Source of the DNA: Azolla caroliniana
Lineage: Eukaryota > Plantae > Polypodiophyta
Length of the DNA stretch: 64,000 nucleotides
Assembly (NCBI GenBank): GCA_043228905.1
Contig: JBHGNT010000006.1
Span: 13,082,001 to 13,146,000, forward strand
Reading direction: 5' to 3'
Shown: in pieces, positions 15,371 through 60,496 of the stretch
Numbering within the stretch: the stretch's first letter is position 1
Layout of the letters: each line of letters opens with the position of its first letter
Notes under the pieces: generated by a model
What the model was told of the DNA's origin: nothing
The model's input: the letters and a program-made list of their open reading frames with translations, nothing else
The model's database searches: none
Position numbers and translations under genes: made by a program

Positions 15371-15372
15371 GA

Positions 15373-37682: not shown

Positions 37683-38194
37683 ACTTCACAAATTTTGTAG
37701 GGGAATTCTCAAAAGAAAGAAGAGGATAACATTGTAGATACCCTGATAACTGTGTGATATGTTCAAATTGATATATTAATGTTCACATCTAAAGTTTGAC
37801 AGTTTTGACAGTTTATGAATATCATCTACATTTTAGGAGTTGTGGATTTATCAAAATTGTTTATGAATATTGTCTACATTTCTTGCGTTGTGAATTTATC
37901 GATGTTAATGAGCACTAAATTTATAGATGATGACATTAAGTATTGCAATGTTACCTCTTATACTTAAAACATTTTCAAGTCTAACAAAAGATGTAATCTT
38001 AATCTCATCAAGACGGTGAAACCATTAATCTTAACTTGTGCCTTGAGTTAACCATTGTGATTTTCTTTAAGTTAACTACATTAAGGCTTCTAGAGAGTGC
38101 ATGAATATGCATTCTCTAGAAGGTTCTTGAAAGTTCTAGTGATCAATCTATAATGCAATAAGTTGAATCTTATACAATACAGTAATGCATAGAT

Positions 38195-38263
38195 GGATGT
38201 AGCTCAACTAGCAAGGTTGCCCAATAAGACCATAAGGTCATGGGTTCAACCTCCACCATTCCA
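38195..38263 (+). pseudogene. Degenerate tRNA-like / tRNA-derived sequence inside the chromovirus LTR
   Basis: A-box-like TAGCTCAACTAG, B-box-like GGGTTCAACC at tRNA spacing, ends in CCA. Anticodon arm is not recognisable. Confidence 0.55.
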
Positions 38264-38341
38264 TGTGGCATCCTCTCTATGACATTATCCTCCCTCTAAG
38301 GCCACCTCCTAGGACTTGCACTTGGTTTTTGTGGATAACGT

Positions 38342-39652
38342 TCATGAAATGCTCGAACTATGTTCGGCGCATGCTTGAGATGATGTGCCGGCTCCCATGA
38401 TGCTTCGGAGATCGGGTACCCTTTCTAGATAGAGGACAAGGTATTGAAGTTGGTGATGGAAGAGATGAGAGTCGAGAATTTGGTCGACCTCATATTCTTC
38501 TCTGGTTGAGAGCTGGATTGGTGATGGAGGAGATGGAGGAGATGGGTTTCGATTAGGGATTTCAGATTTATGGTGAGGTTCCAAAAGGGAGACATGGAAT
38601 ACATTATGAATACGGAAGTGGGATGGCAGCTCTAAGAGGATAGCCATGGAACCAATTTTCTCGATGATTCGGAAAGGGCCTAACTTCTTGTAATTCAGCT
38701 TCGGACAAGGATGAGTGATGGCAATATTGCGACGGAGAAGCCAAACAAAGTCACCTACCTCAAACCGGGGAGCATCTAAGCGAAGACGGTTAGCTTGCTC
38801 CTTGTAGCGTTCACCAGCAAGGGTGTGTTCCAAGGAAAGATCGCGATGTACATCCTCCAAGAGACATGTCTGGTCCTCCGCAGAAGGTTTGACAGAGTCA
38901 TAGGGAAGCGAAATGTTGAAGCAGGGGTGGAGACCATAGTTTGCGAAAAATGGAGTAATTCTCGTAGATGCATGCAGAGAGTTGTTGTAGGCGAACTCGG
39001 CAAGTGGAAGAAGGTCAGCCCAGTAGTTGTCTTGTTGGTAACTAAGAGAGCACCGCAAGTATTGTTCCAACATTTGGTTAACCCACTCCGTTTGTCCATC
39101 GGTTTGCGGATGATAGGTGGAAGACAGATTCACAGTACAACCGAATGTTTGCAGAAGGTGCCGTAAGAAATTGGAAACAAATTCTGGTCCTCGATCAAAA
39201 GTGATATCGTCTAGGAGTCGATGTAGTCGAACCACATTTTTGAAAAACAAATCGGTTGTCTCCTCTCCGGTAATGGTTTTGGCACAAGGAGCAAAATGAG
39301 CCATCTTGGTAAAGCGATCGACCATGACGAATACTGATTCATAACCACCAACAAAGGGAAGGTCAGTGATGAAATCCATGGAAAGAGAGGCCCAAGGCCA
39401 TTTGGGGATTGGGAAAGGGTGAAGGAGACCATATGGTCGATGATGAGATGCTTTAGAGCGAGCACATACGTCGCAAGACTTAACAAACTCTTTGACCAAT
39501 TTCCATGGTTGTGGCCACCAATATCCCTGAGATATCAACTCCGAGGTTTTTGCAATGCCAAAATGACCAGCAAGTGGATCATCGTGACACTCGTGAAGCA
39601 CCCTCGTCCGACAATGACCTTCTAGGACATACAAAAGATTATCTTGAAACAA
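38342..39652 (-). CDS. pol: Chromoviral integrase with GPY/F motif and chromodomain (frameshifted end)
   Basis: HECHDDPLAGHFG, CDVC, SMDFITDLP, DRFTKMAHF, HPQTDGQTE, GPFRI, EEYEVDQILDS. Confidence 0.92.
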   Translation of the reverse strand: MFQDNLLYVLEGHCRTRVLHECHDDPLAGHFGIAKTSELISQGYWWPQPWKLVKEFVKSCDVCARSKASHHRPYGLLHPFPIPKWPWASLSMDFITDLPFVGGYESVFVMVDRFTKMAHFAPCAKTITGEETTDLFFKNVVRLHRLLDDITFDRGPEFVSNFLRHLLQTFGCTVNLSSTYHPQTDGQTEWVNQMLEQYLRCSLSYQQDNYWADLLPLAEFAYNNSLHASTRITPFFANYGLHPCFNISLPYDSVKPSAEDQTCLLEDVHRDLSLEHTLAGERYKEQANRLRLDAPRFEVGDFVWLLRRNIAITHPCPKLNYKKLGPFRIIEKIGSMAILLELPSHFRIHNVFHVSLLEPHHKSEIPNRNPSPPSPPSPIQLSTREEYEVDQILDSHLFHHQLQYLVLYLERVPDLRSIMGAGTSSQACAEHSSSIS

Positions 39653-42006
39653 AAGATTATCCTGAATTGTTAAACCAACTAAATCGGGTCTTTTGGGAGC
39701 TTGCCAGTTGAGCTACATCCATCTATGATAACGGCCTCATGCAAAGGATGGCCCCAAACTGGTATCGACCGGTGTACTATGCTAGCCGAAAAGAATTATT
39801 CGACAACAGAATGTGAGGCACTCAGCATGATATACAATATCACAAAATTTAGGCATTGTCTGCTAGGCCAAAAATTTACGTTCCATGTCGACCACTCGAC
39901 GTTACTGTACCTAGTCAACAAGAAGGCACCGACTAGCCGATTGGCACGATGGATGTTACTTCTCCAAGAATTTGAATTTGACATACACCATCGGCCAGGA
40001 GTACAACACGCAGTGGTAGATTATCTGAGCCGGCTCGAATAAGGGGAACTAGTCGAAACCGTATGTAATGATCTGCCCGACGCCAACATTTTTGGCATTG
40101 ATATGGCCACACAACATGTTGAAATCAAGGATGAATGGATAAATGACATGACTCACTTCCACTCAGCACAGGAATTCCACCTCACCATTTGCCCTTAGAT
40201 GCCAAGAAGCAATTAGCAGTCTGAGACCGAAATTTTTGCATGTTCACATATACACTTTATCACAAGGGCTCGGACAACATCTGGCACCGCGCGGTGCGAC
40301 AGTTCAAAAAAGATGGTATCTTACAAGAAGAAGATGCCCATGAATTTAGTAGGCAATGTGACTTATGTCAGCGCATGGGCCAACCCAACAAGCAACCTCG
40401 TATGCCTCACAAACTAGTTTTTCCATTAGAACATTTCCAAAAGTGGGGATTGGATTTTGTTAACCCATTCAAACCGGCCGCAACTCGAACCAGAAATAAA
40501 TATATCATTGTGACAACTGATTATTGCCCAAAATGGGTCGAAGCGAGGCATTTCGCGACAACACGGCCATGTCTACTGCCAAATTCGTTTATGAATATCT
40601 ATGGTGTCGATTTGGCTGTCCAATCGAGCTCGTCAACAACCAGGGAGGTCATTTTCTCAATCGACTTTTTTGAGATCTCACCGCACACTACGTGGTAGTA
40701 CATAAGAAAAGCACACCATACTATCCTCAGACGAACGGACTGGCCAAGTCAACGAATAAGACACTGCAAACTATCCTCAAGAAGATCGTGAACGAAAATC
40801 GAACCGATTGGGATGATAAGCTCCATACTACACTCTTGGAGTACCGAACGTTGTTCAAGACAAGTATCAGATCCACTCCTTTTCGTTTGGCTTTCAATTT
40901 GGAAGCAATCATGCCAATTGAGTTCCAAGTACCAAGTCTACGAGTCCAAATTACCGAATGACTTCCTGAGTCTGAATCCGAATAGAAACAACACGAACAA
41001 TTACTCGAGCTCAGGGAACATCAGATCGCCAGTTTGACCCAATTTGAACATGGGCAGCGCCAATGAAAAGCCTCTGTCGATCACCAGCAGAAGGGATCGG
41101 AGCAACCATTCGAAATCGGAAAACCGGTCCTCATTTTTCAAACACTACTCGGCTCAATGCCAGGGAAGCTCCGTTTCCGGTGGACATGACCCTTCTGGAT
41201 TATCGACGAATTTAACGGAACGTTCTAGCTCGGCACTTTAGTCAGCGACATCATACCGAAATGGGTCAATGGGTTTCAGTTAAAACCAAATCTCGGCCAT
41301 ACCCCACCAAACCCTTTCACTGGAAAGCGACACGACCACGATCGGCCCACAGTAGGTGAAACAGAGGATCTCGAGGACCAATCACCTCAATCATGGTAAT
41401 TACCTTACCTACCCCAGAAATTGTATACTATGAAAAAAAACCACTAAGTTAAGTATTTAAGGAGCATGCACGACATACGAGAAAATAAAGTACAAATGGT
41501 TTTTGAGACATGTGTTCTTAAAACCTTATTATGGCAGGAAAGATTCTGATTCTAGGGAACAAGGCCACAACTTGCGAACCAAGGCACATACAAAAGGGAT
41601 GACACTACAGACACATCACTCACTTACACACAGAAGCTTGCACTCGCTCCTCGTCTTTCTATCCCCACACTTACTCTTCATCTTCTAACAAAATCTTGCC
41701 GCATGAAGTGTCCAAGGAGCTCCGCACTTGGTTGAACAAGCACGGCTTGGGTGGATACCTCCGTGTAGTAGATGCACATCCCTACCCGAAGGTGCAAGAG
41801 ATTGCACGTAGGGTGCATCCCGACACCATCACCAACAACCAGATCCAGTCAGTGTTGGGATTGCTATGAGGAGGAGAACATGACATTCGAGGCTCCGCCT
41901 CAGAACATCCTTGAAGAACATTTCAAGGAGTACTCAGTGTCTGCAAAAGCCTATCGCACACATGGAGGGCCCAATGACTTTTTTGGGAGATCTGGCACTC
42001 TTAGAG

Positions 42007-45000
42007 TGTTAGGAATATGTCCCTCCAGTGGGAGGAGACAACTGCCCGGAGAGAGCCGACAGATGAGGAGTCAACTCAGAGACAGTTAATCGAGGTCGAA
42101 GACACGACCGACTAGTTGGGCCGACCAGATGGTGGATGCCTAGGTCGATTAGTCGGACTGACCCGACAATTGACGAATGAGTCGGCTAATTAGTAAGACT
42201 ACTACTACTATTATTATTGGATAATAACAATGGCCAAGATTGTAAATACCCCATTCTGTGTATTAGTATAAATACAACTAGGGCAAACATGATGTTAGTT
42301 GTGTGTGATCCTCTGTTGTAGAAAAATGATAGAGAAGAGTGAGAACATGACGAGAGACTAAGCGAGCGGCGCCATAACTATGTTCTGTAATAGCATACGC
42401 CAAGAGCCCTACGCGGCTGATACACTCGGTGTAAAGAGTGTTGTACTCTAATCTCGTCATTGTATATCCATTGTATAGTGAATTTCTGTTCTCCATTGTT
42501 TTCTCCCACTTTAGGGTTTCCACGTAAAATCTGTGTACATTGTTTCTCATTCTGTGTTCCATAACTGTGTATTTCAGTGCATTCCTTCTTGTGGATCGAC
42601 GATTCATTTCTCTACAAACTAGTATCAAAGCTTGAGGTGCATGGAAGGAGGTGTGAGTGGATTCCCAGGAATGGTAGTTCTAAACTCTCAGAACTATGCA
42701 GACTGGAAGATAAAGATGGAGGACCTTCTCATAGTCAAAGACCTGTACAAGCCGATAGACAGAGCCGAAATACCCACGGGGGTATTAGTGTCGGAATGCA
42801 AACTTCTTAATAGAAAGGCGGTGGCCACCATCCGACAGTGCGTCAATGTAAGTGTCCTTTAGCATGTGGCGAATCACACAAATGGCCACGAGATGTGGCA
42901 GAAGCTGTCAGGTCTATATGAGAGGAAGAACGCCCTCAATAAAACCTCACTGATGAGAAATATCGTATGATTGAAATACAGAGATGGTGAGAGCATTGTC
43001 GAACACATGAACACATTCATGGGGTATGTAAATCAGCTTGCTACAACCAAGTTTCCCCTTGATGATGCTATGCAGGCCATCTTGCTAATGTGCACACTGC
43101 CGGATAGCTAGAAGAACCTGGTGGTTACTCTTAGCACCTCCTGTCAAGAAGAGAACTTGTCTTTACAAGCAGTGAACACAAGCATCCTGAATGAGGAAGT
43201 GAGAAGGAAGGACAAGGGTGTCCTAGTCCAGTCGGAGTCAAATTTTACTCAACACGTCAGCAGAGGAAGGAACTAGCAAAGAAGTCCACCAAGGAAAGAA
43301 AAGTCTCAAGCCAGGTCAAAGTCCAGAGCAAAGCTCATGTGCTTTTATTGTGGAAAGCCTGGACATTTCCAGAAAGGTTTCCGACACCTTAAGAGGGAAA
43401 AGAGTGTTGGTAAAAATGTCGAACCCAAGAAGATTCCTAAAGAAAAGTACACTTCAGCCATTGCTACGAGCAATGAAGAACTTTTGTTCATCTGTGAACA
43501 GACAAGTGCAAACCTAGCGAGTGAGGAATGCACTTGGGTGATCGACTCCGGTGCATCTTTCCATATAACTCCATCCAGAGAGTATTTCTCGACTTACATA
43601 GATGGGGATCATGGTTATGTAAATATGGGTGACAATGAGAAGTGCAAGATAGTCGGAGTCGGAAGTGTCTGCCTGACGACATCGATAGGGTGTCGAGTGA
43701 CTCTAAAGGATGTTCGACACATCCCTGATATCAGATTGAATCTTATATCGACTGGAAGACTGGACGACACAGTTTTCGGAATGGCAAGTGGAAGTTCTTA
43801 TAGTGGCCCAAGCATAGAAGAAAGGTAGATTGTATATGATGCAAGATCAAGTACTAAAGTCAAAAGATCCAGTATTGTCGTTCTTCAAGGAGTTCCAGGC
43901 AAGAGCCGAACGGGAGTCGGGTCGGAAGTTGAAGGTTGTCCGAACCGACTATGGCGGGGAATATAAAGGGCAATTCAAGCAATACTACAAGGCCCAAGGT
44001 ATTCGAATCGAATACACAGTACCGAAGACCCCTGAGTTGAACGGGCTTGCAAAGAGGATGAACCGGACAATCATGGAGAGAGTAAGGAGCATGTTGTCGT
44101 ATGCTAAACTGCCAAAAATATATTGGGTTGAGGCGATGTACACAACTGTTTATCTGAGCAACAGGTCCCCCTCAGTACCGTTGAAAGGTGATGTCCCACA
44201 AAGGGTGTGGACAGGAAAGGATGTCTCCCACCGACACATGAGGGTGTTCAAATGCCTAGTGTACATGCATGTAGCTAAGGATCAGAGGTCAAAGCTCGAT
44301 AGTAAGTCGAAACCATGCATATTCATGGGATACTCGAAAGATGAGTTTGGCTATAGGCTATGGGACCTAGTCGACAAGAAGGTAGTAAGGAGTCGGGACG
44401 TAGTCTTCCTGAAAGACAAGACCATGGAGGACTGGAAGCATCAAAAGTCAGAATCGACTAACCAGTCAACCTCCACCACTATCGACTTGAGGCCATGTGA
44501 ACCAACAAAGTCGGTTGTTCGGAGACAGCTAGTCGGCACACAACTGATTCCGAGTTGGTCGTCTCGGAGAGACCGACCGACTATGAGTCTAAGTCGGCAG
44601 AGCTGTTAAGCTCAATTGAGGAATACGAGTTGGAGTCGTCCAACCTTCAAGAACCGATCGACATATATGAACCCGACCAAAGAGGAGAGGACCGATGACA
44701 TATGCCGATCAATACATTGTCTTGACTGATGAAGGTGAACCTGAGTGCTACGACGAAGCCATTGTCGACAAGCACAGAGAGAAATGGTTGAGCACGATGC
44801 AAGATGAGATGGACTCTCTACACGAGAATTATACCTACGACTTGGTGGAGCTGCCGAAAGGTAAGAGAGCACTCAGGAATAAATAGGTCTACAAGGTGAA
44901 CACTAGAGAAGTCAACAGTGCGCCTAGGTACAAAGCCCGCATTGTGGTGAAGGGTTTCCAATAGAAAAAGGGCGTCAACTTTGACAAAATATTCACTCCT

Positions 45001-47129
45001 GTCATGAAGATGACATCCATTAGAACTACTCTGAGCATAGCTGCCAGTATGGATGTAGAGATCGAATAGTTGGATGTCAAGACAACAGTTGGATGCCAAG
45101 ACAACATTCTTGCACGGGGAGCTGGATGAAGAGATCTACATGCAGCAGCCCGAAGGTTTTGAGGAGAAAGGGAAAGAGAACCTGGTGTGTCGACTAAAGA
45201 AAATCTTGTATGGGCTGAAACAAGCTCCACGCCAATGGTACAAGAAGTTTAAGTCCTTCATGGTGGAACATAGGTTCCAGAAAACACAAGTTGATCACTG
45301 TGTGTTCGTCAAAAGGTATGACGAAGGTGACTTCTTGATTCTCTTGTTATATATAGATGACATGTTGATAGTCGGTCAAGATACAAGGAACATCGGAAGC
45401 TTGAAGAAAGATCTAGGCAAATTGTTGTCACGACTACATAAATATATGGCCTTGTCGACCACAGAGGCATAGTACATGGCAGCGGTAGAGGCTGGTGAGG
45501 AGTTGATATGGATGAGAAACTTTCTCAGCGAGCTGGGGATGAAGCAAAAGGATTTTTTTCTTCACTGCGACAACCAGAGTGCCCTACATCTAGCCAAGAA
45601 TGTTGCATACAATTCTCGGACCAAGCACATATAGAGAAGGGAGTTTGTTAGGAATATCTCCCTCCAGTGGGAGGAGCCGACTGCCCGAAGAGAGCCGACA
45701 GTTGAGGAGTGAACTCAAAGAGATTTGATCAAGGTCGAAGACACAACTAGCTATTCGGGCCGACCAGATGGTCGATGACCAGGCCGACTAGTCGAACCGA
45801 CCCAACAGTCGACGAATGAGTCGGCTGATTAGTAAGACTACTACTATTATTATTATTGGATAATAATAATGGCCAAGATTGTAAATAGCCCATTCTGTGT
45901 ATTAGTATAAATACAACTAGGGCAAACATGATGTTAAATGTGTGTGATCCTCTGTTGTAGAAAAACAATAGAGAAGAGTGAGAACGTGAAGAGAGACTGA
46001 GCAAGCGGTGCCATAATTGTGTTCTGTAACAGCATACACCAAGAGCCCTATGCGGCTAATACACTCGTTGTAGAGGGTGTTGTACTCTAATTGTTGGGAG
46101 ATAGGTCCCTCCAGATGGGAAGGGAGAAGAACAGTGTTGATAAGGAAACTCGGCCAAGGCCGATAGGCCGAGGCCGAAACCGGATGACGAGTACCTGGCT
46201 ACAGAGAGCCGGATGGTGCAGACCCAGTGAGAACCGGATGAGGAGTACCCGGCTACGGAGAGCCGCATGGTGCAGACCCAGTGAGAACCGGATGAGGAGT
46301 ACCTGGCTACGGAGAGCCGGATGGTGTAGACCCGGTGAGAACCGGATGAGGAGTACCCGGCTACGGAGAGCCGGATGGTGCAGACCCGGTGAGAACCGGA
46401 TGAGGAGTACCCGGCTATGGAGAGCCGGATGGTGCAGACCTGGTGAGAACCGGATGACGAGTGCCCGGCAAGATCCGGATGATGCAGGCCCGGTGAGGAG
46501 CGCTCTCCGGATGAAGAGACATATTCATAAATATGTTTCTGAGAGTCCATCATGGCTATATTTGTAAATAGCCGAAAAGTCATATTAGTATAAATATGAC
46601 TTACGGCAAACTTTTATATGTGTGCCGTTATTCTTGTCTGCGTGAGATCATAGCGTGTAACTGTGTACAGAGAAAGAGAGAGAGAGGAAGAGGTCGTTGC
46701 CTCCGTTGTAACCGCCACCTGTGGCGAAGATAGAAAGCTCGAGGTCGTTGCCTCGGTGCTTCACTGTTGTACACTGTAACATAGTGATAGTTTACAGCCT
46801 GTGGGCTGCCGTGGTTTTTTCCCTAGTTTGGGTTTTTTCCACGTAAACATTCTGTGTACTCTTCTCTTCACTATGTCGTGCATTCTTACCTGTTTTCTGT
46901 GTTTGATTTTAGACTCGGTTGTGGCCGAGCATCATTCATCGGAGCGTGTAGTTCCCGTCACTAATCTCGTCATTGTATATCCATTGTATAGTGAAGCTCC
47001 GTTATCTGTGGTTTTCTCCCGCTTTAGAGTTTCCACGTAAAATCTGTGTACACTGTTTCTCATTCTGTGTTTCATAACTTTGTATTTCAGTGCATTTCTT
47101 CTTGTGGATCGATGATTCATTTCTCTACA
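42007..47129 (+). mobile_element. Copia family C element (degenerate, internally deleted)
   Basis: 5' LTR 42007-42616 and 3' LTR 45646-47129 (split by a solo LTR). Degenerate PBS TAGTATCAAAGC, TSD TAGAG (42002-42006, 47130-47134). Gag-pol related to family A. Confidence 0.92.
46092..46960 (+). mobile_element. Solo LTR with 54-bp tandem array
   Basis: Same family as the LTR 32769-33474. TSD CTAAT (46087-46091, 46961-46965). AACCGGATG anchors every 54 bp from ~46177 to 46447. Confidence 0.93.
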
Positions 47130-48883
47130 TAGAGTTCAGTTGCATGCATGTTAATGCGTATAGCATGCCAAAGAAGAAGGTTGGCAGCATCATCACGGCA
47201 TATAGAGGCGGCGCCCTCGATTGGGGCATCATCACCGGGGAAGGAGTTTGTGCCGCCTTGTCGGCTTTTCAGGTAGGTAAAAGGTTCTTCCCTACCGTAG
47301 CATACTACTTAGTTCTGTTTTACCCCCCGAATCCACGGCCACACCCCACCGAACCCTCGCCCTCCCCGCCCCACCCACCCACCCATGCCAAACGCCAAAG
47401 AGTTCTTCAATTAGCTCAGGAGGAATGGCAGGATGACACACCTGTCCGCACCCCTACGTCGTCATGGCCAATACCCGAGCCAAGGGCACAAGAAGGCCCA
47501 AACAACATCACCATCAGGGGACAAGAAAAACCTAAGCTCTCTGCCCCATTGGACCCACCCACACACCAATTGGCGAGCCTGTGACCCGACTATCGGGAGG
47601 AGACCTAGAAAAACACATCAGACAGTAGTAGGTCGCCCGTGGAGCAAACAAAGTGGCCCCAAGAGGAATTAGCGACACCCAAGACGAGCCCTATCGAAAA
47701 ACGTCGTCGTCTCCAACAATGCCGCAAAGAACAAACTGCAAGGGACTCCTCACCGAGGACCGGCAACTAGTCGTTGTGCCCGAAAAGACAATTGCAGTGG
47801 TTACCAACAAGGCTTTGGCCTAAACAGGACAACAAGAGCAGAGGCAACCTTCCCGATTCTCAGAGTAGGAAGTAATGACCTTCAAGGATCAGCCCGCCGA
47901 GTCCTACGAGCTTGGTGTGATCTTGCAACACGGCACGACATACGAGCTAATAGACTTTCTCGTTCGCCTACAGGTTGCTACTGCGACATGCATGGCTCAA
48001 GATCATATCAAACAACAGATGGTCAAGTGGGCGTTAGCCAACAAGCTCAAATCAAACAAGGAGCCCAAGCTACAAAAGGTTGGACGTAAACACGTCACCA
48101 AAACACGTCGAGGATGGATTGAGCTACCTGAGCTCAACACGGCGATGGTCGAAGTGTACTGCGAGTTGGAGAAAAGCCAAGCCAAAGATATGGTTGTCAA
48201 CAGCAAATAGGTGCACAAACAGGCCAAAATGGCTATGGAGTTATGGCAGGCCTCGTAAAACCACCTGACCAAACTTCAACAACGACTCCAAGCAATCGGC
48301 GAACCCAACCTTCTCACCCTCCCACCCCCAACTTCCAATCATGTCGAGACGCATCCACCCAAACCGATGACACCAACCCTCTTAAGCCAATGGATGTGTC
48401 CACACAAACCGACGAATGTTACCGGCCGGCAAGAAGGCTTAAGGAGGTCCAAACCAGAGTGTCAAAGGAATAGTTTATTCGGGAACTATTGTAATTAGTA
48501 ATCTTAATATAGATATTAATATATGAGAAGATGTGGACGGACGGACCGGAATCGGTATGCTGATCCGGATCTGAACCGATCCCGTAAAGGTGCCAGTTGG
48601 CACCGTTTTGTATTTCGCACCGGAGACCTATATAAAGGCCCGGTTATAATGTAATCAAGGCGGATAATTAATAAAGCTTATTGTCTTAATCTTCCAGTGT
48701 TGATTACCGTTTTGTATTCATTGTTATATCTTACGCGTGTTAATTATGGATTGCTAAGTAACCAATTAAGGTCGAATTAAGCATTGTGCCGTAAGTCATT
48801 CTACCGTACCACCCTTTGGTGAAGTGTCTTAAGTGGACACCCTGTGTTAGGCTGTTGTCCGGCCCTAGCAATAACACAGTTTT

Positions 48884-48893
48884 TGGCGACCAC
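48884..48893 (+). promoter_or_regulatory. Putative short PBS of G1 (TGGCGACCAC, tRNA-Arg-like)
   Basis: TGG-initiated, 7 nt after the 5' LTR. Matches my recollection of the complement of a plant tRNA-Arg(UCG) 3' end over 10 nt. Confidence 0.6.
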
Positions 48894-48931
48894 GATTCCT
48901 GTACAATTGCAATGAACAACGGCGGGAATGG

Positions 48932-50990
48932 ATGACTAGGCCAACAGACGACCCGATTACGGAGAGAGCATGAAGACTTGCTAAACGGAGAAGGCGGCGA
49001 GAGGCTTTCCAGCAAGCAGCGGAAGAAATCCGAACGGATCGATCATTTTCCAAAGTAATCCGGAAAGTGACGGAGGAGTCGCTCCGTCTACAACAAAACG
49101 CCTACCCGGACGAAGGAAGCAGCTTAAGCAGCCTCCGGGAAGCGGAATCCCTTCTGCAGGCCTTGGCTGGAAGAGACGGCGAATCCAAAGTGTTTTCAGC
49201 ACTGGAATAGGCCAACAGACGACCCGGTCACGGAGAGAGCACGAAGACTTGCTGAACGGAGAAGGCGGCGAGAGGCTTTCCAGCAAGCAGCGGAAGAAAT
49301 CCGAACGGATCGATCATTTTCCAAAGTGATCCGGAAAGTGGCGGAGGAGTCGCTCCGTCTGCAACAAAATTCCTACCCGAATGAAGGAAACAGCTTAAGC
49401 AGCCTCCGGGAAGCAGAATCCCTTCTGCGGGCCTTGGCCGGAAGAGACGGCGAATCCGAAGCGTTTTCAGCACTGGAATCGGATTCAGAAGGGGGTTACA
49501 GTGCGCACACGAACTATCGCAGCAGTAACGACACCCCAGGAGGACCGGACAACGAGGAGTCGGATACAGTACCAACAACGGAACCAGAGTTGGCAGATCG
49601 GGAACCTCCGGCACTAGACGTGGAGCAACCTCCGGAGACGGGGGAAGACCGGCTAAAACCTCCAACATTGGAAGTCGAGCCAGCAACACCAAAGGAAGAC
49701 CGGCAAAGACCTCCCACGCCGACGAAACATCAGGAAAAACCACCAACACCGCCAGCCCGCGTACCGACACCAGACGACGAAATGTCGTTCCAGTACTCCA
49801 AGTATAGGGATGATCCGGACGCGGAGGCTCATGTTCACGTGTTCCAACAAACATGGGAGGCGAACCATGTGTCACAACGGCTAACCGCGGCAGAAGAGGA
49901 ACGATCTAAGATAGCCGAATTCGGTGTGACATTGGACGGACCGGCTGCCAGATGGCACCAAACGCAGGATCGCAGCACCATCACCACCTTTGTGGACCTG
50001 AAAGACAAATTCTTGCACTTCTTCCAGAAGGAGGTGGATCAGCGAGAAATGGTGGGCTTATTTTATACAATTTGGCAGGACCCCGGGGAGAGAATCCCGT
50101 AGTTTGTCATCCGGTTTCAACGGATGCACAGTCAACTTACCCGCACACCTCCGGAGGAAGAAACGCGGGCTATATTTTTAGCCGCGCTCCGGGAACCTCT
50201 ACGAACGGTATGCACGGTCATCGACTTTCGCACAAGCACCGTCGACCAGGTCATCGACCGGGTTAGAGAAATGGAGAAAACAAGCTCTTGGCTAACAATG
50301 GGAGCCCTCCAACGAGCATTACCAACCAATGAGGATCTCCGTTTCCGGCAAGCAATCCAATGCACGACCTGCTTGAATTCCGGACACTCGTCACTGGAGT
50401 GCACCATGCGGACGCACTGCTTACTCTGCCAATCTACGAGCCACATGATGGACCGGTGTGAATATAACTTATTGAATCGGCAAGCACCACCAGTCCGGCA
50501 AATCGAGCCACGTAGCAGCCGAGACGAAGAACACAAACGCTGGCAGCGAGTGGAGCGATATCGACCGGCACAGGATGTCCGGTACGACAATCGGCGAGGC
50601 AACTATGACCGGTACAAGAGATATGACAATTACCGAGATTACAATGGACGGTACGAGCATCACAACCAGGACCACTCCCCCGGGTATCACCAATGACGGG
50701 AAGATTACGGGAGGTATGACGACCAACCCCAGCAAGGGTACTGCAACAAAAAGAACTTTAATAAAAAATGGCATTTCAAAAACGGGAGCCACCCACATGA
50801 ACCAGAAAAAGGCGCCTCAAGCAGCCAACCGGACCAGAGCCCCGCGGTTACCACAAGTCCTCCACCGGGTACTGGAAACAATGTCGAATCCAGCAACACC
50901 CGGAAAGCATATTGCTATTACTATCGGCAAGAAGGACATTATAGTAATCAATGTCCGGCAAAGAGCTATGATAAGCGACCGGCAGTAAAC
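48932..50990 (+). pseudogene. gag: G1 gag, disrupted
   Basis: DPDAEAHVHVF, TLDGPAARWH, knuckles CTTCLNSGHSSLEC and CLLCQSTSHMMDRC; stops at ~50100 and 50694. Confidence 0.88.
48938..49479 (+). repeat. 271-bp tandem duplication at the start of G1 gag
   Basis: GGCCAACAGACG at 48939 and 49210; both copies end in TTTTCAGCACTGGAAT. Confidence 0.9.
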
Positions 50991-53900
50991 ATGGTAGTCG
51001 CCGAAGTCGGAGACCTCCAGCAGGTCACCACAAGGTCGAAGGGCAAGACGACGGAATGGGAGACACAAGAGGCCATCCGGAAACAGGCAACGGAATGGGT
51101 GAAAAAGGCAAATGAGCGAAACATAGCAGAACTCGCGCAGCAAAAGGAGAACACCGAAGAGCTCGCCGGCGGCAGTCAGTCCGAAAACGCGACATGGTAG
51201 GCATTGCAGGAATGCCAGGTCACGCTGCCATTAGGATGACTCTTGCAGCTAGTACCAAGATTCACAGAAGGACTCAAGCCCGGCATGACGACAGGCGACA
51301 CACCACCGGCTCCGGCATTCTTCTCAAATCCGGAGGAAGGACCGGTTGTGGTGGAGACCAACAGTCCGGCAATTACGGCCATTGTAAAAGGGAAAGAACT
51401 CCCCGACACGATAATAGACGAAGGCTCCGGCGTTAATGTAATCAGCCTCCGAATGTGCGATGCTCTTGGAATCCAAGAGTGGGAGCCATGTCCGTTCTGG
51501 CTCCGAATGGCGGACACAAGCTCGGTGTGACCGACAGGATTAATACGGAACTTGGAAGTAACCATCGGGGGCCACACATTCCGAATCTCAGCCGTAGTTC
51601 TCAAGTGGCAGGCTCAAGGAGCATACCCATTATTGTTGGGATGCCCTTGGTTAAAGACGGCACACATCAAGCAGAACTGGAGGAGGAATATGATTACGTT
51701 CCGGCGGGGAAAAGCGAAGGTACGAGTACCAACACAACCAAGGAAGGGCACCGGCAAGGATCTGACACCGTTATATGTGGAGTGCGTCAATATGCTGGAA
51801 GGATTAGCAGACAAAGAAGAAGAGCAGTACTTGTTGGAGAACCCGAAGATTGTACCCCTATTCGAAATTGACGTCGCCGAAGCGGTATCACCCTACTTAC
51901 TGCAACCGGACGGAACCGAAGCGGAACCGGATAAAGAAGCAATCCGGGAGTTATGGCAAGCGCAGGAGGTGTTGGAAAGGGAAATGGCCGTATCCCAGCG
52001 CGTAAAAGCGTCTCAATTAGAAGAGGTAAATCAAGGAACGGCGAAGGAGGCAAAACCGGTGCACATCGCCAAAGTAATGAATCCAGAGAACAAAACGGCG
52101 ATAATTACACTCCTCAACGAGTTTCGCGACGTATTTTCCTGGTCTTACGAGGATATGAGAGGCCTGGATCCTCAATTGTATCAACACCAGATACATCTGA
52201 GCAAAGACGCCAAGCCGGTAGCACATCATCAGTACCAGATGAACCCAAACTACGCCGCCAAAGTCAAGGAGGAGATCGACAAATTGCTGAGGGTTGGCTT
52301 CATCCATCCCGTAAAGAAATCTACATGGCTGAGCCCGATCGTAGTCGTACCGAAAAAGAACGGCAAAATTAGAGTTTGTGTCGACTACCGGAAGCTCAAT
52401 GCGGCAACGGTAACGGATGCATTTCCACTTCCGTTTACGGATGGAGTTTTGGATGCCGTCGCCGGCCATGAAGTCTACAGTTTCTTAGACGGATTCAGCG
52501 GGTATAATCAGATCCGGATGCACCCTGAGGATCAAGAGAAAATGGCTTTCGTCACCAAATGGGGAGTGTTTGTTACTGTGGTGATGATGTTCAGGCTAAA
52601 AACGGCACTAGCAACATTCCAACGGATCATCATGGAGATCTTTGGCGAATACATACCGGCTTTTATGCCGGTGTTCCTTGACGACTTCGCCGTCTATAGC
52701 AGAGAAGAAGATCATTTGCAGCATCTCAGACTATGTCTAGAGAAGTGTAGGGCGTACCGGCTAAGCCTGAATCCGGCGAAGTGTGTATTTGGAGTGTCCA
52801 GCGGAACGCTACTAGGGCATATAGTGAGCAAGGAAGGCATTGTCGTAGATCCGGACAAAGTGAAAGCAATCCTGGAAGCACCGGCACTGGCAACGGCAAA
52901 GGCATTGAGCCGTTTCCTAGGACAAATCCGTTTGCATAGCCGTATGCTCCGATATTTGGCAAACCTAGCTACACCTCTGCATGCGGCAGTACATCAAACA
53001 CCGTTCCAATGGACCAACATCGAAGACAAGGCGTATCGGGCACTAAAGGTGTTACTGTCACAAGCACCAGTAGTGCAGCCTCCGAATTGGAGTAAAGAGT
53101 TTCATGTGTTCGTGGATGCCTCTGACATCGCAATCGGCAGCGCGCTCATGCAGCTTACCGAGCCAAGGTGGTATCGGCCAGTGTACTATGCCAGCCGGAA
53201 GCTATCCCAAGTGGAACGAAATTATTCTACCGCGGAAAGGGAAGCTTTAGGAATGATCTACAGTGTAACAAAATTCAGGCATTATTTATTGGGAAGAAAG
53301 TTCTCCTTCCATGTAGATCATTCGGCACTCCTCTACCTAGTATCCAAAGCGTCACTTACCGGTAAGTTGGCCCGGTGGACCTTGCTGTTGCAGGAGTTCG
53401 AATTCGAGATATTCCACCGACCCAGCATACAGCATGCGGTAGCAGATTATCTAAGCCGGTTAGATTCCGAGGAGACGGGTGACGGAGTACCGGACGAGTT
53501 TCCGGATGCAGAGCTTTTTCGAGTCACCACGGAAACGGCAACAGATGAAACGGTGGCACAAGAAGATAAGTGGCTAACTAATATGCACAAGTTTCTGAGT
53601 ACCGGATTGCCTCCGGAGGAGATGAACCGGGACGAGAGAAAACGCCTGGCGGTACAAAGCCGGCACTTCTGTTTATTACAAGACACGCTATACCACAAAG
53701 GTGCGGACGGTATTTGGCGACGAGTGGTGCGCAGCGACGAGAAGGAGGTAATACTACGGGAAGCACACTGCGGAGTCGCCGGAGGCCATTATGCCGGAGA
53801 TGCGACGGCAAGGAAAGTATGGCAAAGTGGCCTATGGTGGCCGACGACATTGAAAGATGCAGTCTGGTACGCGAAAGAGTGTGATCTATGCCAGCCAATA

Positions 53901-54850
53901 GGCCAGCCAACGGAGCAAGCTCGGATGCCACACCAGCCGGTCCTACCACTAGAACCATTCCAAAAATGGGGGCTGGATTTTGTCGGGCCATTCAAACCAC
54001 CGGCAATCAGAACTGGCAACCGGTATGTGATCGTCGCGACGGACTACTGCACTAAATGGGTGGAAGCGAAAGCCCTACGAGACAACATCGCGGCGTCAAC
54101 GGCGAAATTCTTATACGAATGCATTTGGTGCCGGTACAGATGCCCCATAGAGCTGATAAGTGACCAAGAAGGGCACTTTCTTGGACAGGTGGTAGAAATT
54201 TTGACGACGTTCTATGCGGTAGTACATAAATGGAGCACACCGTACTATCCGCAAGCAAACGGGTTAGCTGAGTCGACGAACAAAACGCTCCAGAATATCC
54301 TCCGGAAAAACTTCAAAGAAAACCGGACGGATTGGGATACGAAGCTGCATAGTGCGCTCTGGGCCTACCGGACAGCGTACAAAACAAGCATCCGAACAAC
54401 ACCATTCCAGTTAGCATTCGGATTAGAGGCAGTCATGCCGGTCGAATTCCAGGTACCAAGCTTACGGATTCAGATTCGGGAACGACTGAACGAAAAGGAA
54501 TTGGAGGCAATTCGGTTAAAGGCTCTGTGTGAACTAGAAGAACACCGACTGACGAGCATCATGCACCTAGAATTGGAACAATGGCGACGGAAAGCGTTTG
54601 TAGATCGGCACCGGAAGGGAAACGAGAAAATGTTCGGCATCGGCAAGCCGGTACTAGTGTTCCAGACCCGGATGGGTAAAATGCCAGGCAAACTACGGTT
54701 TTGATGGACCGGACCGTACTGGATCACACGCGAGTTTAATGGGTCTTACCAGTTAGGGACACTTGTCGGCGAAGTGCAGGGTAAATGGGTCAACGAATTT
54801 AGACTAAAACCATACAAAGGACCTATGCCCAAGAACCCATTTGAACGAAG
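50991..54850 (+). pseudogene. pol: G1 pol (protease, RT, RNase H, integrase); 1050-aa open core 51552-54704
   Basis: IIDEGSGVN, VCVDYRKLN, FLDGFSGYNQI, FLDD, FVDASD...EREAL...VDH...ADYLSR, HCGVAGGH...CDLC, WGLDFVGP, ISDQEGHF, QANGLAE, GPY. A few in-frame stops flank the core. Confidence 0.95.
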
Positions 54851-55432
54851 GGCCGCCACTGAATCAAACGCCACCCGTGAGGAAAACGGCAACCACCAAG
54901 CCGGAAAGGGGGAGCACAAGCCGGCAACCAGGGAAAGCATAATGACGGCAAACCGTCAAGAGGCCGGCAAGGTGCGCGATTCGGGTAAGAGTCTGATAGG
55001 ACCGGAGAAAAATTAACCACACAATTAATTTTTCGAGAGAAAAAAAAAAAGTAAGTAAAAATTGAATGGAATCAAATAAATCATGAAAAGGAGTGGTGGA
55101 AACGGCCATGCACACGAGGAGTAAAGAGGCACGTCCAAAAGGTACGAGGGGCTATGAATAGGACATTAAACCACCGCCACATGGCACGCAATGCTATTAT
55201 AGTACACGACCTGCACATGCGGAGGCTCGAAAAAGGCGCCAAGATGCAGAGAGAAAAACCCCCACGCATCGAGACCTTCTCCTATCGCGAACCAAGGAGA
55301 ACAGACACACAGCGACGCGTGAAGATCAATCATAGAGAGCTCGCACATAGAGAACCCCCTTCCTCAGAACTCTCTCTCTCACACTCTCCCCACCATCAAA
55401 CCTTGCCAACGCTCTCCGACCTCGACACAGAG

Positions 55433-58228
55433 ATGGACTGTCAAACGCTATCTGAAGCCGCCAAGAAATGGTTACGGCAGCACGGTCTGGAGGGTTTCTT
55501 AACGATCATGGAGGCGGCGCCACACAAGGAGGCCGAAAAGATTATAAAAGAAATCGACACAGAGGTGATCACAGAGGAGGCGATCCGTGCGTTAATAGGC
55601 CTTTCGGAGGGAGACATCTACACGATCGATAATCCGACCTCCGAGCAGCTCATCAAATATTTCGGTGAGTACTCTCTCGCCAGCAAGGGCTACAGAACAC
55701 AAGGCGGCGAAGATATGTTATTCCGCGAAATTATCCGTGTGCTCCATGAGTTCGGCCACGTGTACCCTCGACCCCCCGTCATGCCTCAGGACCGAGCAGG
55801 CTTGATCATCGCAACGTACGAAGGGGTCAAGGTAGATGGGCCGGTGCTGATCGCCGATGGGCTGTGTATGGCCATTGATATAGTAAGAGGAAAGGACGGC
55901 AAGGAAGGCCGGAAAATATGGCATGCGGTGACACAATGGCTCACCCTATTGGCGCCACCAGTCGAGCCCGTCCAAACCAAGAAACGGGGAAGAGAAACAG
56001 ACGGCACCCCGAAACCTGCTTCGAAACGGCAACAACTGTTGGCCTCCAAGGCCACTAAGGGCAAGACGGCCGATGCAGAGAAGGCGGCGAAGGAGCGCGC
56101 CAGCCGGAAGCGGCCAACGGATGCAAGTGAGGAGACACTGGCACGGCCCCTGAAGAGCCCACTCCACCGACCGGTGCAATAGGAAACGGACACCTTGGCG
56201 GCAAGAATGAATGACGAGACTCAGGCGGAAGAAATGGAGGAAGAACCCACGCAGCATCTCCAGCGGCGGCCGATGAAGAGCACTGCTGAATCAGCCGGGA
56301 AGCGTTCGGACCCACAGAAGGATGGAACGCCTGCAACTCATGCTGAGGATCCCACGCCAAGGGAGGTACCGGAACCGGTTCAGAGGGAACCGGTCACAGA
56401 AGTCCCTACACAACAGGCAGCACCGGCAAGCCCCGTAACTCAAGAGCCGGATATACAAAGGCCAACCTTCCCAGCCAGCCAAGAACAAGCAGACAAGGGG
56501 CGACTAGCCGAAACACACTCAGAGCCAGAACGGCAAAGTGGTCAGCTGGCAGAACCAGAAGCGCAGCTCGACGCAGTAAGGTGGGACCAGCCACCGACGA
56601 GTGAACCCATCAGCCAACTCTTCGTGCAAGCGCAACAACAGTGTACCGGCAGCCAATGGCTCCGGTGGATAGGGGAACAAATTGCCGAAGTAGTCGGATG
56701 CATAGAAGCGGAGGAAAGAGCGCAAACGGAACTGTTGCTCGTCACAACCGATGAACTGGAGACGGCTCGGTCAAGGATCCAGTGCCTCGAACAAGACTTG
56801 GATTGGATCACGGGAGATATGGCCAAAATGGCCTTAACCGCAACGGAGATCCAAGAACCGATGACTCCGGTTAATGTACAGCGGAATAAGACCTCGGAGA
56901 CACAAACTGTCCCGGAGAAAGATGCGGCGCAAGCCCAAGAGCTTGCGGAATTACGAGATGAGCTCGCCGCACAAGAAGCATTACGGAGCCGTGAACGTGA
57001 CTTGAAGAAGGCGGCCGAAGAAGAATTAAAAAAGACTGCTGAGAACATTCGCCGGGCAGAGGAAAACCTACGTAAAGGACATCATGGTTATGACCGGCTG
57101 AAGGAGGAAAAAGAGAAATTGTTGCAAGAAAAAGACAAGCTGCGACGGATGGCGGAAACGGAAATCGAGAGGCTGAAGGAAGAGCTTCGGCAACAGAAGG
57201 ATCGGGAGGACCGCGCGCACCAGCAGATCAACCAAAGGCTGAAGCAGAAGACCGATGATTTCGATCATCTGCATCGGGACTACAAGCAGTTGGAGACGGA
57301 GCATAAGCAACAACAGGAACGGATGGCCGAGCTCCAGCAAGAAGTTGATAGGGCCACAACGGCACTGGCCGAAGAACGAGCGGAAAGTTCAAGGCTATTG
57401 GAGGAAGCGGCGAATGACCGGATGGAGCTCCACAAACAGAACCATGAAGACAAGGAAAGAGCGACAATGGTATTACAGAGGTTGCAAACAACCTATCAAA
57501 ATCAATTGTCGCATTATAGGGAGCAGGAGGCGGACACGGTTCGGATCATCAAGCAATTGAAGGAAGAGCGACAAGCTGTAGAAAATAAATCACAGATGGG
57601 AGCCGAACAGATCCAGTGCATCCTCCGGTCATGGCTCACTAAGATCAAAAGCTTGATTGACGACAGCTTGGTGCATTGGTGGGCGAAATGGGCGCAGAAT
57701 ACAGCGGAACTCCAATTGCTTAGGGTGGACGTGGAAAACCGGCGAAAGGAGGGCGACGACTATTATACGCTGACCTCGGAGGACTTCACCGCCATAAGCG
57801 ATGAGCTGGTAGAAGATTTCACAACCCTGGCGGATGAACAATTGGTGCAGGTCCAGCAGCTCGTAGCTCAACTGGACGACGATCGGCTGGAGGCTCAAAT
57901 CCAGTTCGAAAGCTATGAGCGGTCCCGGCTTCGGGAAGAAAAAGCGAGAAAGGCGGCAACAGTCAACCTTAGTGATGAGGAACCGTCCTCGGTACTAGGA
58001 CCAGACGGGGACCAAGCCGGGGTCAGTCAGCCACAAACAACTCCGATGGAGGAACCAACGAAGGAAACGTTGGTGCCAGAGGCACAAACGGAGCCGCAAC
58101 CCCAAACGGAGAAGGCACATATGGAGCAGCAACCACAACCACAAACGGAACAGCAACAACAACAGATTCCCGACGAGCCATTGGAAATTTTGGAGCAAAG
58201 CATTCTGGACATTTTGGACGAAGCGTAA
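55433..58228 (+). CDS. G1 additional sense ORF (~930 aa, one internal TAG at 56180): N-domain, disordered linker and long coiled coil
   Basis: ORFs 55154-56182 and 56195-58228 are in the same frame. E/K/R/Q heptad-rich region; homologues in G0 and G2. Start codon uncertain. Confidence 0.8.
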
Positions 58229-58241
58229 AAGGGCCGGATAA

Positions 58242-58280
58242 TGGGTTCGACGTACAAGGTATTGTCCCACGGGCGTGCCA
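58242..58280 (+). other. tRNA-3'-end-like motif in the PPT position (PBS-like on the minus strand)
   Basis: TGGGTTCGA-cgtacaaggtatt-GTCCCACGGGCGTGCCA, then TG, then the LTR. Also present at 12385-12423 and 59919-59958. Confidence 0.85.
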
Positions 58281-60496
58281 TGTGTTACCGACCGGCAAGA
58301 AGGCTTAAGGAGGTCCAAACCATAGTGTCAAAGGAATAGTTTATTCGGGAACTATTGTAATTAGTAATCTTAATATAGATATTAATATATGAGAAGATGT
58401 GGACAGACGGACCGGAATCGGTATGCCGATCCGGATCCGAACCGATCCCGTAAAGGTGCCGGTTGGCACCGTTTTGTATTTCGCATCGGAGACCTATATA
58501 AAGGCCCAGTTATAATGTAATCAAGGCGGATAATTAATAAAGCTTATTGTCTTAATCTTCCAGTGTTGATTACCGTTCTATATTCATTGTTATATCTTAT
58601 GCGTGTTAATTATGGATTGCTAAGTAACCAATTAAGGTCGAATTAAGCGTTGTGCCGTAAGTCATTCTGCCGTACCACCCTTTGGTGAAGTGTCTTAAGT
58701 GGACACCCTGTGTTAGGCTGTTGTCCGGCCCTAGCAATAACAACGAACCAACCAAGTCGGCACCAGTCACGGTAACGACCGAGGTCCCAACCCATGACTA
58801 CGGCGAGGAGCTCGCAATTCAAACGGCAATTGCCAAGAAGGCCAAGAAGCTATACCACATAGCCAAAGTAGAAGCCGACCAACTACGGGCACAAGCAACA
58901 AAACGTGAGGCAAAAATCCAACATCTGCTCGACACACACACACGGCCCAACTCTAGGCAACAGAGAAGAACACCGCCACAACTCTCAAGGCCACACAGGA
59001 CCTTGCAGCAACAAAGTTAGTGGAAGCGGAGGAGGAGCATAAAGAGGCATCTTACCTAAAATCCGAAGAACTCCTCACTCTTCAAAACGAGCACACGGAA
59101 CTCCAACAGTGATTCAGTTGGCAGCTTGAAATGTTAGAAGAAGCAGTATAGGACAAATATACATTGTCCAAGACATGCCACCAATTGCAAGTACAACTCG
59201 AATGTCAATGCGACCAGTATTTGAAGGAATTAACCAATAATTCTGATCAAGTCCTACGCCACTTCGACCAACATTCGAAGGAGATGGAGGCAAGGCTAGC
59301 CGCAATCACCATGTCGTACGAAATCGTCAAGGTCAAATTCCATCAAGATGTTGCGGCAAGAACGCACACTACGGCAATCGGAAACCTCCTCGAAGAATTC
59401 AATGACGATCAAATGTTGTTGCGATTGGAATCAGAAGCCTATGAATGAGAGTGCATCCAAGCTGTACAGGAAGCAGAAGCCACCGCACATGCCTCTCCAA
59501 GCCCCATGACCGAGGAAGCAGCCCAGGAGTCGAAAGACGAAGAGGAAACACGGTTGAACGCAGAAATGATGCACATGGTTGAGTAGACCATTGAACCACA
59601 ACAGGAGACACCGGCTCCAACATCCACGACGGAGACTCAAGATCAACAGCTCGACGTATCAGCTGAGTTACACGCCGAAGAGCTTCCAAATGAAGAGCCG
59701 CCTCCAGCTCCGACACATCAACCTGTCGCCCTTGCAAGTAAGAGACAATGTGCAAGTAAGAGCCAACGGCCGAAGAGACGGCCAATAGGAAAACTGGGGT
59801 ATTGCAACAACAAGAGGAGATCCTCGCCATTTTGGAAGAAGACTAAGTGTACCATAGAAATTTTTCGATTTCCTATCATTTTTATTTTGACTTTTGACTT
59901 TTTTGAAAATTTTGGATTTGGGTTCGACATGCAAAGGAATTTTCCCACGGGCGTGCCAGGTGTTATCCGTGGGACAAAGGGTATGAAGTGTGAAATGAAT
60001 CTAAAGAAATGAGTAGGAAAAGTAGGTGAAAAGGAGAATCGACTGTGTGAAGGAAGTAGTTGAACGAAATACGTGCAGCCAAGAATAAAGACCAGAAATC
60101 AGAGAAATGGTTGAAGCGTGCCAAGAAGATACAAAAACTATATAAAGATGGGAGCAGCTATAGGAAAGGGGGTTGGATAGAGAGATAAATACATGTGTGT
60201 CCTATAAGAAAGAGAAAGAGTAATGGTATTGTCGATCGTGAGCCATGTAATCAATTTGTGCAGAAATCATATAATACATACATGTTTCAGGTCAATCTTC
60301 TGGTGTTATATAAATAGTCATCCTTATGCTCATTTCTATCATAGTTTTAGCATAAGTCATAAGACCGGTTGTTTCGGTTGTTTCATAGTTGATCGGTTTG
60401 TTCGGCCCTATCCTACCTTGCGACGCAACCACGGTTCCTTGACTCGATTACTCAAGAAAGTAATCAAAGGTGTCATCCCCAAAGAAGGAGATAACA

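Follow-up and report, generated by a model that had tools for sequence, protein, structure and literature searches.

We analysed a 64,000-nucleotide (nt) stretch of Azolla caroliniana DNA (contig JBHGNT010000006.1, positions 13,082,001 to 13,146,000; hereafter the window) containing a Ty3/gypsy long terminal repeat (LTR) retrotransposon, G1, in which no polypurine tract (PPT) precedes the 3' LTR. The position is occupied by a sense copy of the 3' end of tRNA-Arg(UCU), including the CCA. In canonical LTR element replication, the 3' end of the plus-strand primer sets the left end of U3. From retroelement biology and from the anatomy of the element, we infer that this motif is very probably the plus-strand priming site that replaces the PPT, with a primer ending at the A of CCA, since the LTR always begins 2 nt after it. 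As to the primer itself, the sequences lead us to lean, with somewhat less than even confidence, towards a packaged host tRNA-Arg(UCU) that would anneal to minus-strand DNA.

A copy of a tRNA 3' end precedes the 3' LTR of G1

G1 is a bounded and young element. Its 460-base-pair (bp) LTRs (TGTTACC...AATAACA at 48417-48876 and a direct repeat, also beginning TGTTACC, at 58283-58742, both on the plus strand) are 97.2% identical and are flanked on both sides by the 5-bp target site duplication (TSD) ACGAA (48412-48416 and 58743-58747), in agreement with an earlier note on this DNA that had described it as complete and TSD-bounded. The LTR identity, the intact TSD and a very high copy number reflect recent activity. 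The last open reading frame of G1, ORF3, has its stop codon at 58226-58228. The motif starts 13 nt downstream with the T-stem 5' strand and the T-loop up to A58 of tRNA-Arg(UCU) (TGGGTTCGA, 58242-58250), as established by comparison with tRNA genes. A 13-nt insert between tRNA positions 58 and 59 (58251-58263) separates it from a copy of nt 59-76 that includes CCA and lacks C66 (GTCCCACGGGCGTGCCA, 58264-58280). The spacer TG (58281-58282) and the 3' LTR follow, all on the plus strand and at the coordinates that had been proposed.

The absence of a purine tract, also claimed earlier, was confirmed: purine runs reach at most 4 nt in the 30 nt preceding the 3' LTR, and the purine fraction of the last 15 nt is 0.53. 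In 11 elements of the clade to which G1 belongs (described below; L053 was left out of this measurement), the purine fraction was 0.53-0.60 and the longest run 3-4 nt over the same intervals, and none of the 11 had a PPT at the 3' LTR. The exception in run length is G2, where a run of 7 purines lies inside the insert, about 25 nt from the LTR. The control, a relative from the liverwort Riccia with a normal PPT (L005), showed a longest run of 11 nt and a purine fraction of 0.80.

The last 17 nt of the motif occur three times in the window at up to three mismatches, against 0.08 occurrences expected. The three copies (12407-12423, 58264-58280 and 59942-59958) all lie on the plus strand and are all followed by 2 nt and by an LTR starting with TGTT. 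The first belongs to G0, a divergent 5'-truncated element (motif and TG spacer at 12385-12425, motif at 12385-12423, LTR from 12426, TGTTGGCC), and the third to G2, the older related element whose ORF3 hosts the nested G1 (motif and GG spacer at 59919-59960, motif at 59919-59958, LTR from 59961, TGTTATCC). The complement of the 17-mer was not found elsewhere in the window at up to three mismatches. Two further candidates were rejected: a partial match at 4984-4995, within a copia reverse transcriptase (RT) coding region, and a weak match to a covariance model of the motif at 33647-33676, within a protease coding region.

On the minus strand, the junction reads as the LTR, CA and a primer binding site (PBS): the match to tRNA-Arg(UCU) comprises 7-12 perfect nt, and 15-17 of 18 nt overall, 2 nt from the LTR, which fits the sequence definition of a tRNA PBS. 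The boundaries might then have been mis-set, or an inverted element might be nested here, making the motif the LTR-PBS junction of a minus-strand element. Besides the exact likeness, the covariance model weakly matches true 5' LTR-PBS junctions in reverse (L003 2946-2988). However, the LTRs of G1 are direct repeats within a 5-bp TSD, and the TATA box (TATATAAA, 48629) and polyadenylation signal (AATAAA, 48670) within the 5' LTR, the PBS after it, gag, pol, ORF2 and ORF3 are all on the plus strand, as the earlier note had pointed out for gag-pol and the TATA box. The distance from the end of ORF3 to the motif is 13 nt, and relatives are arranged likewise. The anatomy of G1 already refutes an inverted element there, and we assign this explanation a negligible probability overall.

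Origin of the motif in a mature tRNA

Metagenome contigs were scanned for the T-arm and acceptor pattern GGGTTCRANTCCCAC(N)GGGYGTG, and ARAGORN was run on the 120 loci that this returned. Of the 173 tRNAs called, 98 were tRNA-Arg(TCT), which may not be the host's own. The typical gene has the 3' end ...GATTGTGGGTTCGAGTCCCAC[C/T]GGG[C/T]GTG, runs on into T-rich sequence and has no encoded CCA. The tRNA-Arg(UCU) ending that the earlier note had given is therefore correct, and matching genes exist in these contigs, an outcome on which the earlier note had made its proposal depend. The motif is a sense copy of this tRNA over the T arm, the 3' strand of the acceptor stem and the discriminator, plus CCA (about nt 44-76, starting from about the variable loop). 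Judged by sequence, it derives from the mature tRNA, because it carries the post-transcriptional CCA that is absent from the genes.

Nine elements share two changes: C66 is absent, and 13-14 nt are inserted exactly between A58 and G59. Methylation of A58 normally halts RT on a primer tRNA, and for this reason the last 17 nt constitute a classical unit of PBS length. The position of the insert at this stall site, together with the CCA, suggests that the motif originated when RT switched onto a mature, modified tRNA. No tRNA gene was found within the window, and neither ARAGORN nor Rfam gave a match to the motif itself, since only part of a tRNA is present.

Conservation of the motif across a clade of plant elements

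Contigs encoding relatives of pol and ORF3 were collected, and the LTR junctions were read in each. The motif, the 2-nt spacer and TGTT were present in 12 elements, 3 of them in the window and 9 in other assemblies. Besides G1, nine were of a hairpin type, including L001 (pol 71% identical to that of G1), L219 (ORF3 64% identical), L217 and L218 (ORF3 37% identical) and the short non-autonomous elements L006 and L053. The other two, L002 (pol 54% identical; ...CCACCAGGTGTGCCA-AG) and L003 (pol 56% identical; ...CCAGCCGGGTGTGCCA-GG), were of a short type, limited to the last ~17 nt and with C66 present. All spacers read N-G (TG, GG or AG), and the register of 2 nt between CCA and the LTR, first noticed as a gap in G1, is invariant in all 12. 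The last 7-12 nt before the spacer match the tRNA perfectly in every element, despite pol identities of 54-71%, ORF3 identities down to 37% and LTRs that cannot be aligned. A 65-column alignment of the motif revealed invariant GGGT.C (T arm), CCCACGG, GTGCCA and GTGTT blocks between unalignable flanks. The covariance model, built from eight motif copies, scored hairpin-type copies at 62-77 bits and true tRNA-Arg genes at 20-26 bits. A scan of viral contigs for the junction 17-mer returned 87 matches, none with the full motif (at most ~24 bits).

Sharing between families was also estimated from the contigs of four DNA runs (three organisms) aligned to 57600-58800 at a likeness of at least 80%, where contig depth is a rough measure of sharing. 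The summed depth was highest in the bin 58256-58296 (135,000-265,000), compared with ~100-57,000 in ORF3 bins and 1,300-25,000 just inside the LTR (58297-58378). The contigs diverge just outside 58243-58286, dozens per run before 58243 and 39 after 58286 in one run. These loose contig ends, of low agreement, indicate that many different families probably share only the motif block. Among the best 40 of 251 variant rows, none fell between 58225 and 58322. The motif is the most conserved and most widely shared block of the element, which answers the concern that it might be unconstrained across copies.

This conservation bears on whether the motif is a functionless relic, left by the accidental capture of a tRNA fragment during template switching or by the insertion of a short interspersed element (SINE) or tRNA pseudogene. 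RT is known to switch templates onto tRNAs, and the hairpin lies exactly where RT stalls at methylated A58 (m1A58), which fits the copying of a modified mature tRNA. Against a relic, the motif is the best-conserved block across families with unalignable LTRs and ORF3 identities down to 37%, its hairpin covaries, and its position is fixed to the base; a SINE would bring the 5' half of the tRNA with the A box, and no CCA. This explanation is close to excluded, and we consider it most improbable.

The pol of G1 matches plant proteins only, the nearest named ones being from the liverwort Riccia sorocarpa (~41-46% identity); taken by themselves, these matches point to a land plant as host, probably a bryophyte. 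On a quick tree of RT, RNase H and integrase, G1, L001, L002 and L003 form one clade (Shimodaira-Hasegawa-like approximate likelihood ratio test [SH-aLRT], 99), and L005, L215 and L216, with a tRNA-Asp-type PBS (TGGCGCCGCTGCCGGGGA), fall in a separate, sister clade. This tree came from a quick search and contains only the pol relatives and a few named plant proteins. The Riccia element L005 has an LTR pair 99.8% identical, the TSD CCTTT, a tRNA-Asp-type PBS and an ordinary PPT (GAGAAAAGGGGCA|TGTGAT). L004, L127, L215 and L216 had no clean 3' junction and were excluded from the count of PPT versus motif. In the clade, each of the 11 relatives sampled has the motif where the PPT would lie; the possibility, raised in advance, that most relatives would have an ordinary PPT was thus not borne out. 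To judge from these sequences, PPT loss and replacement by a tRNA copy span a whole clade of successful, recently active, high-copy plant Ty3/gypsy elements.

Proposed priming of the plus strand by a host tRNA

The mechanism that we favour, each biochemical step of which we infer, would proceed as follows. Once minus-strand DNA has been made, RNase H would remove the template, and a packaged host tRNA-Arg(UCU) would anneal through its final 17-18 nt to minus-strand DNA that reads TGGCACGCCC-GTGGGAC at this site. RT would extend the tRNA across the 2-nt spacer and then through U3-R-U5, RNase H would strip off the tRNA, as happens at the 5' PBS, and integrase would trim the 2 nt. The HIV PPT shows the same register of primer, 2 nt and TG. 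The duplex between tRNA nt 59-76 and the complement of the site was predicted at -29 to -37 kcal/mol in all 11 elements computed, compared with -5.9 kcal/mol for the PPT control and -23 kcal/mol for the 12-nt 5' PBS of G1 itself (rough values, obtained with RNA parameters). With a host tRNA, the CCA register would need no special cut, because the tRNA has a natural 3' end.

The 5' PBS of G1 is a separate, short plus-strand site, as the earlier note had stated: TGGCGACCACGATT lies at 48884-48897, after a 7-nt spacer following the LTR (reading TGGCGACCAC from 48884), and is also conserved in the relatives L218 and L219. The site has no complementarity to tRNA-Arg(UCU), and none of the 173 tRNAs from metagenome contigs matches it (a tRNA ending in TCGTGGTCGCCA). 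A vertebrate PBS sharing its first 12 nt is labelled Arg or Trp (PMC4724089). The 5' PBS varies between subfamilies, with TGGCGACTCCGCTGGGGA / TGGCGATCCTGCTGGGGA in L002 and L003 and TGGCACGCCCGG..., the complement of tRNA-Arg(UCU), in the close relatives L001, L006, L053 and L094; in L006 and L094, it runs to the full 76-nt complement. The tRNA of the 3' motif never changes. In the part of the clade with TGGCACGCCCGG, tRNA-Arg(UCU) is, by complementarity, the true minus-strand primer, and the element ends are mirror images. The virus-like particles of the clade would therefore already handle this tRNA, and in an ancestor that had it in use, plus-strand priming by the tRNA would have functioned from the start. 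Extended to the clade as a whole, the proposal would be that these elements lost the PPT and prime both strands with host tRNAs, one at the 5' PBS on genomic RNA and tRNA-Arg(UCU) at an inverted second PBS on minus-strand DNA beside U3, with the same tRNA at both ends in some subfamilies. We put this wider scheme forward more tentatively still.

The extended PBS copies (L006:1190-1266 on the minus strand, L094:1-2055, L053:208-244 and L115 ~1150-1215) carry 33, ~50 or 76 nt of tRNA-Arg(UCU) complement, compared with the usual 12-18 nt, which implies read-through of the primer tRNA beyond A58. L094 is a tandem array of ~540-bp units, each with one LTR and a full tRNA copy. It was rejected as a 3' motif with a whole tRNA, the LTR end resembling that of L006, so that the array represents the 5' LTR-PBS side read in reverse.

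Since the 3' motif is complementary to the tRNA-Arg(UCU) PBS of L001, L006 and L053, it could instead act at the RNA level, either mimicking a tRNA and pairing with the 5' PBS so as to circularise the genome for strand transfer, on the lines of Ty1 CYC or the Ty3 bipartite PBS, or recruiting nucleocapsid, RT or a tRNA enzyme of the host; priming of the plus strand would then fall to something else. The conserved T-loop GGGTTCGA and the hairpin do resemble a recognition structure. However, G1, L218, L219, L002 and L003 keep the motif unchanged although their 5' PBS is not complementary to it, and the window contains no complement of the 17-mer elsewhere at up to three mismatches. Circularisation is thus not the conserved role, because PBS-motif pairing is possible only in elements of the L001 type. 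A function in RNA would also leave the invariant CCA, 2 nt and LTR register unexplained and the elements without a plus-strand primer at the U3 boundary. We consider it unlikely.

A covarying hairpin and the case for the element's own RNA

In hairpin-type copies, the insert and its flanks extend the T stem as a hairpin with the loop AAG, AAT or AAA (GTAC-AAG-GTAT in G1). The inner helix is GTAC/GTAT in G1, GTGC/GCAC in G0, L217 and L218, GGAC/GTCC in L001 and L006, and GTAC/GTAC in L219. In this structure, 90.9% of the cells are paired (94% in the inner helix), compared with 33-49% when the partners are slid along the alignment. Changes on both sides occur at 5 of the 6 inner pairs, and the covariation score was reached by none of 500 shuffles. 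Single-sequence folding energies were no better than those of shuffled controls, except for L217; support for the hairpin therefore rests on covariation and not on stability.

Several of these results weigh against priming by a host tRNA. Compensatory changes at tRNA positions 58/60 (L001) and 59 (L217 and L218) hold the pairing at a cost in tRNA identity, and two hairpin cells are G-U pairs, valid only on the plus strand. Covariation and G-U pairs point to a probable RNA structure acting in cis, something that annealing of a host tRNA could do without. Nine elements have the same C66 deletion, which shows that copies inherit the site and do not renew it from the tRNA. Within the clade, the 5' PBS has changed to another tRNA on two or more occasions, but not once has the 3' motif done so; a 3' site that any packaged tRNA could serve ought to change just as readily. 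In addition, particles of G1-type elements would have to contain two different tRNAs. Finally, the assemblies of the relatives may represent few related hosts.

All but the last of these points would be accounted for if the site and its role were the same and the primer were a piece of the element's own genomic RNA. In that case, the hairpin would refold as double-stranded RNA and escape RNase H, leaving only ~11 nt (CGGGCGUGCCA) paired to minus-strand DNA, and RNase H would cut after CCA, the hybrid there being identical to the one that it cleaves in removing a tRNA primer. The likeness to the tRNA would be historical and maintained by enzyme specificity, so that the motif could remain tRNA-Arg(UCU)-like while the 5' PBS changed, and a second packaged tRNA would be unnecessary. 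The hairpin fits this alternative at least as well as it fits the host tRNA. However, RNase H normally degrades a non-purine RNA/DNA hybrid, and its exact cut after CCA without an RNA-DNA junction would be a hypothetical step. The single-sequence folds, L217 apart, do not stand out from shuffled ones, L002 and L003 keep the last ~17 nt with no T-arm half or hairpin seen upstream, and neither the conserved unpaired TTCG of the T loop nor the exact CCA has an obvious use. Judged from the sequences, priming by the element's own RNA is a real possibility that we nevertheless somewhat doubt. It and the host-tRNA mechanism predict different RNA on plus-strand strong-stop DNA.

Comparison with known replication strategies

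To our knowledge, all retroviruses and LTR retrotransposons are assumed to prime the second strand from a PPT, and annotation tools search for one. The motif shares with the PPT of HIV-1, Ty1, Ty3 and Athila the position before U3, a primer 3' end ~2 nt before the TG of the LTR and a presumed role in setting the left end of the complementary DNA (cDNA). It differs in not being purine-rich (0.53-0.60), in consisting of a copy of a tRNA 3' end that includes CCA and a hairpin, and in a primer that may not come from the genome RNA. Like the tRNA-primed 5' PBS, it is complementary over 10-17 nt to the CCA-bearing end of a mature tRNA and lies within a few nt of the LTR terminus, and tRNA-Arg(UCU) is also the 5' primer in L001, L006 and L053. 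In contrast to the 5' PBS, the complementarity of the motif lies on the minus strand, so that a tRNA could bind only minus-strand DNA and not genomic RNA. We know of no accepted scheme in which a tRNA primes the second strand.

tRNA- or PBS-related sequence near the 3' end of the genome, beside U3, has parallels in Ty3 and Ty1. Gabus et al. in 1998 reportedly described a bipartite PBS in Ty3, the 3' part of which is near U3 and complementary to the tRNA, and Cristofari et al. in 2002 are said to have described a CYC5/CYC3 interaction between the 5' and 3' ends of Ty1. Unlike the Ty3 part, the motif is a sense copy of the tRNA, and most subfamilies have no 5' PBS with which it could pair. Self-priming in Tf1/Sushi elements, where a piece of the element's RNA freed by RNase H is the primer, parallels the alternative based on own RNA; Tf1, however, self-primes the minus strand from the 5' end of its RNA and retains a PPT for the plus strand. 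The non-autonomous Helenus (TRIMp3) LTR elements also contain tRNA-derived sequence, a tRNA-like part inside the LTR with A and B boxes as an RNA polymerase III promoter, which is not complementary to the PBS, next to a normal PBS and PPT (PMC10886601). Here, by contrast, only the 3' part of a tRNA (~44-76) with CCA is present, outside the LTR and replacing the PPT, and the combination of features that defines Helenus is not seen.

In a literature search that left most subscription journals uncovered, we found no description of a tRNA-end copy replacing the PPT or of a tRNA-primed plus strand, the REXdb survey, the ATHILAfinder preprint and the Helenus paper included, and searches with motif sequence strings returned only chance primer matches. 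If correct, our proposal would represent a new solution to plus-strand priming, whichever primer is used, and would show how one of the core cis elements of a retroelement can be remade from the tRNA that primes it. The failure of such elements in PPT-based annotation would be explained, and silencing based on tRNA fragments would gain a possible second target, cDNA instead of RNA.

Other features of G1 and neighbouring elements

G1 has features of Ty3/gypsy elements, namely direct 460-bp LTRs with TGTT...AACA ends flanked by a 5-bp TSD and the pol order RT, RNase H and integrase, and lacks a PPT abutting the 3' LTR. As in Athila in the REXdb sense, it is without a chromodomain and without a second RNase H and has extra ORFs between pol and the 3' LTR (domain definition from PMC6317226). 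It differs from Athila in both the PBS, which there is for tRNA-Asp/Asn (TGGCGCCGTTGCC), and the conserved junction between the PPT and the 3' LTR (both from the ATHILAfinder preprint).

All genes of G1 are on the plus strand. A gag fragment (49326-50102) gave a weak match to Retrotrans_gag, and pol (51552-54704) matched the Pfam families RVT_1 (266-424), RT_RNaseH (513-616), Integrase_H2C2 (728-781) and rve (801-900); neither a chromodomain nor a second, archaeal-type RNase H was detected with Pfam. The region of gag and protease up to 51552 is broken up into several ORFs, and this copy of G1 is therefore probably no longer autonomous. The extra ORF2 (55154-56182, 342 amino acids [aa]) and ORF3 (56195-58228, 677 aa) belong to no Pfam family, and only nine homologues of ORF3 were found among 5.8 billion proteins. 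The tail of ORF3 is Q-rich and acidic and ends in ...ILDILDEA, and its position is kept across the clade. The leader and gag start carry a 271-bp tandem duplication, 93% identical (48934-49475). Judged by contig depth, families also have two LTR blocks in common, both of which can be made out in L218 and L219: in U3, a block with many CCGGAT/CCGATC repeats (58379-58500), and at the end of U5, a block with a GTGTC...GACAC hairpin immediately before the terminal AACA (58666-58742).

Sequence of the host element G2 lies within 33749-48416 and 58748-59960, its pol pieces (33749-35368 and 39730-41177) being split by other insertions. No partner of its 3' LTR (59961-) was found in the window. The start of this LTR (59961-59976, TGTTATCCGTGGGAC) holds an inverted complement of the motif sequence TCCCACGG, which could place the junction of CCA, spacer and LTR in a hairpin loop; this complement is absent from the other 11 elements. 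Arrays of a 54-bp tandem repeat at 32788-33061 and 46104-46539 lie beside repeated segments (33013-33474 matches 46320-46960). In L002, a cluster of short repeats downstream of the element (13267-15900) contains GGATTGAACCC, a reversed T-arm-like box, and may be a tRNA-derived SINE or a satellite.

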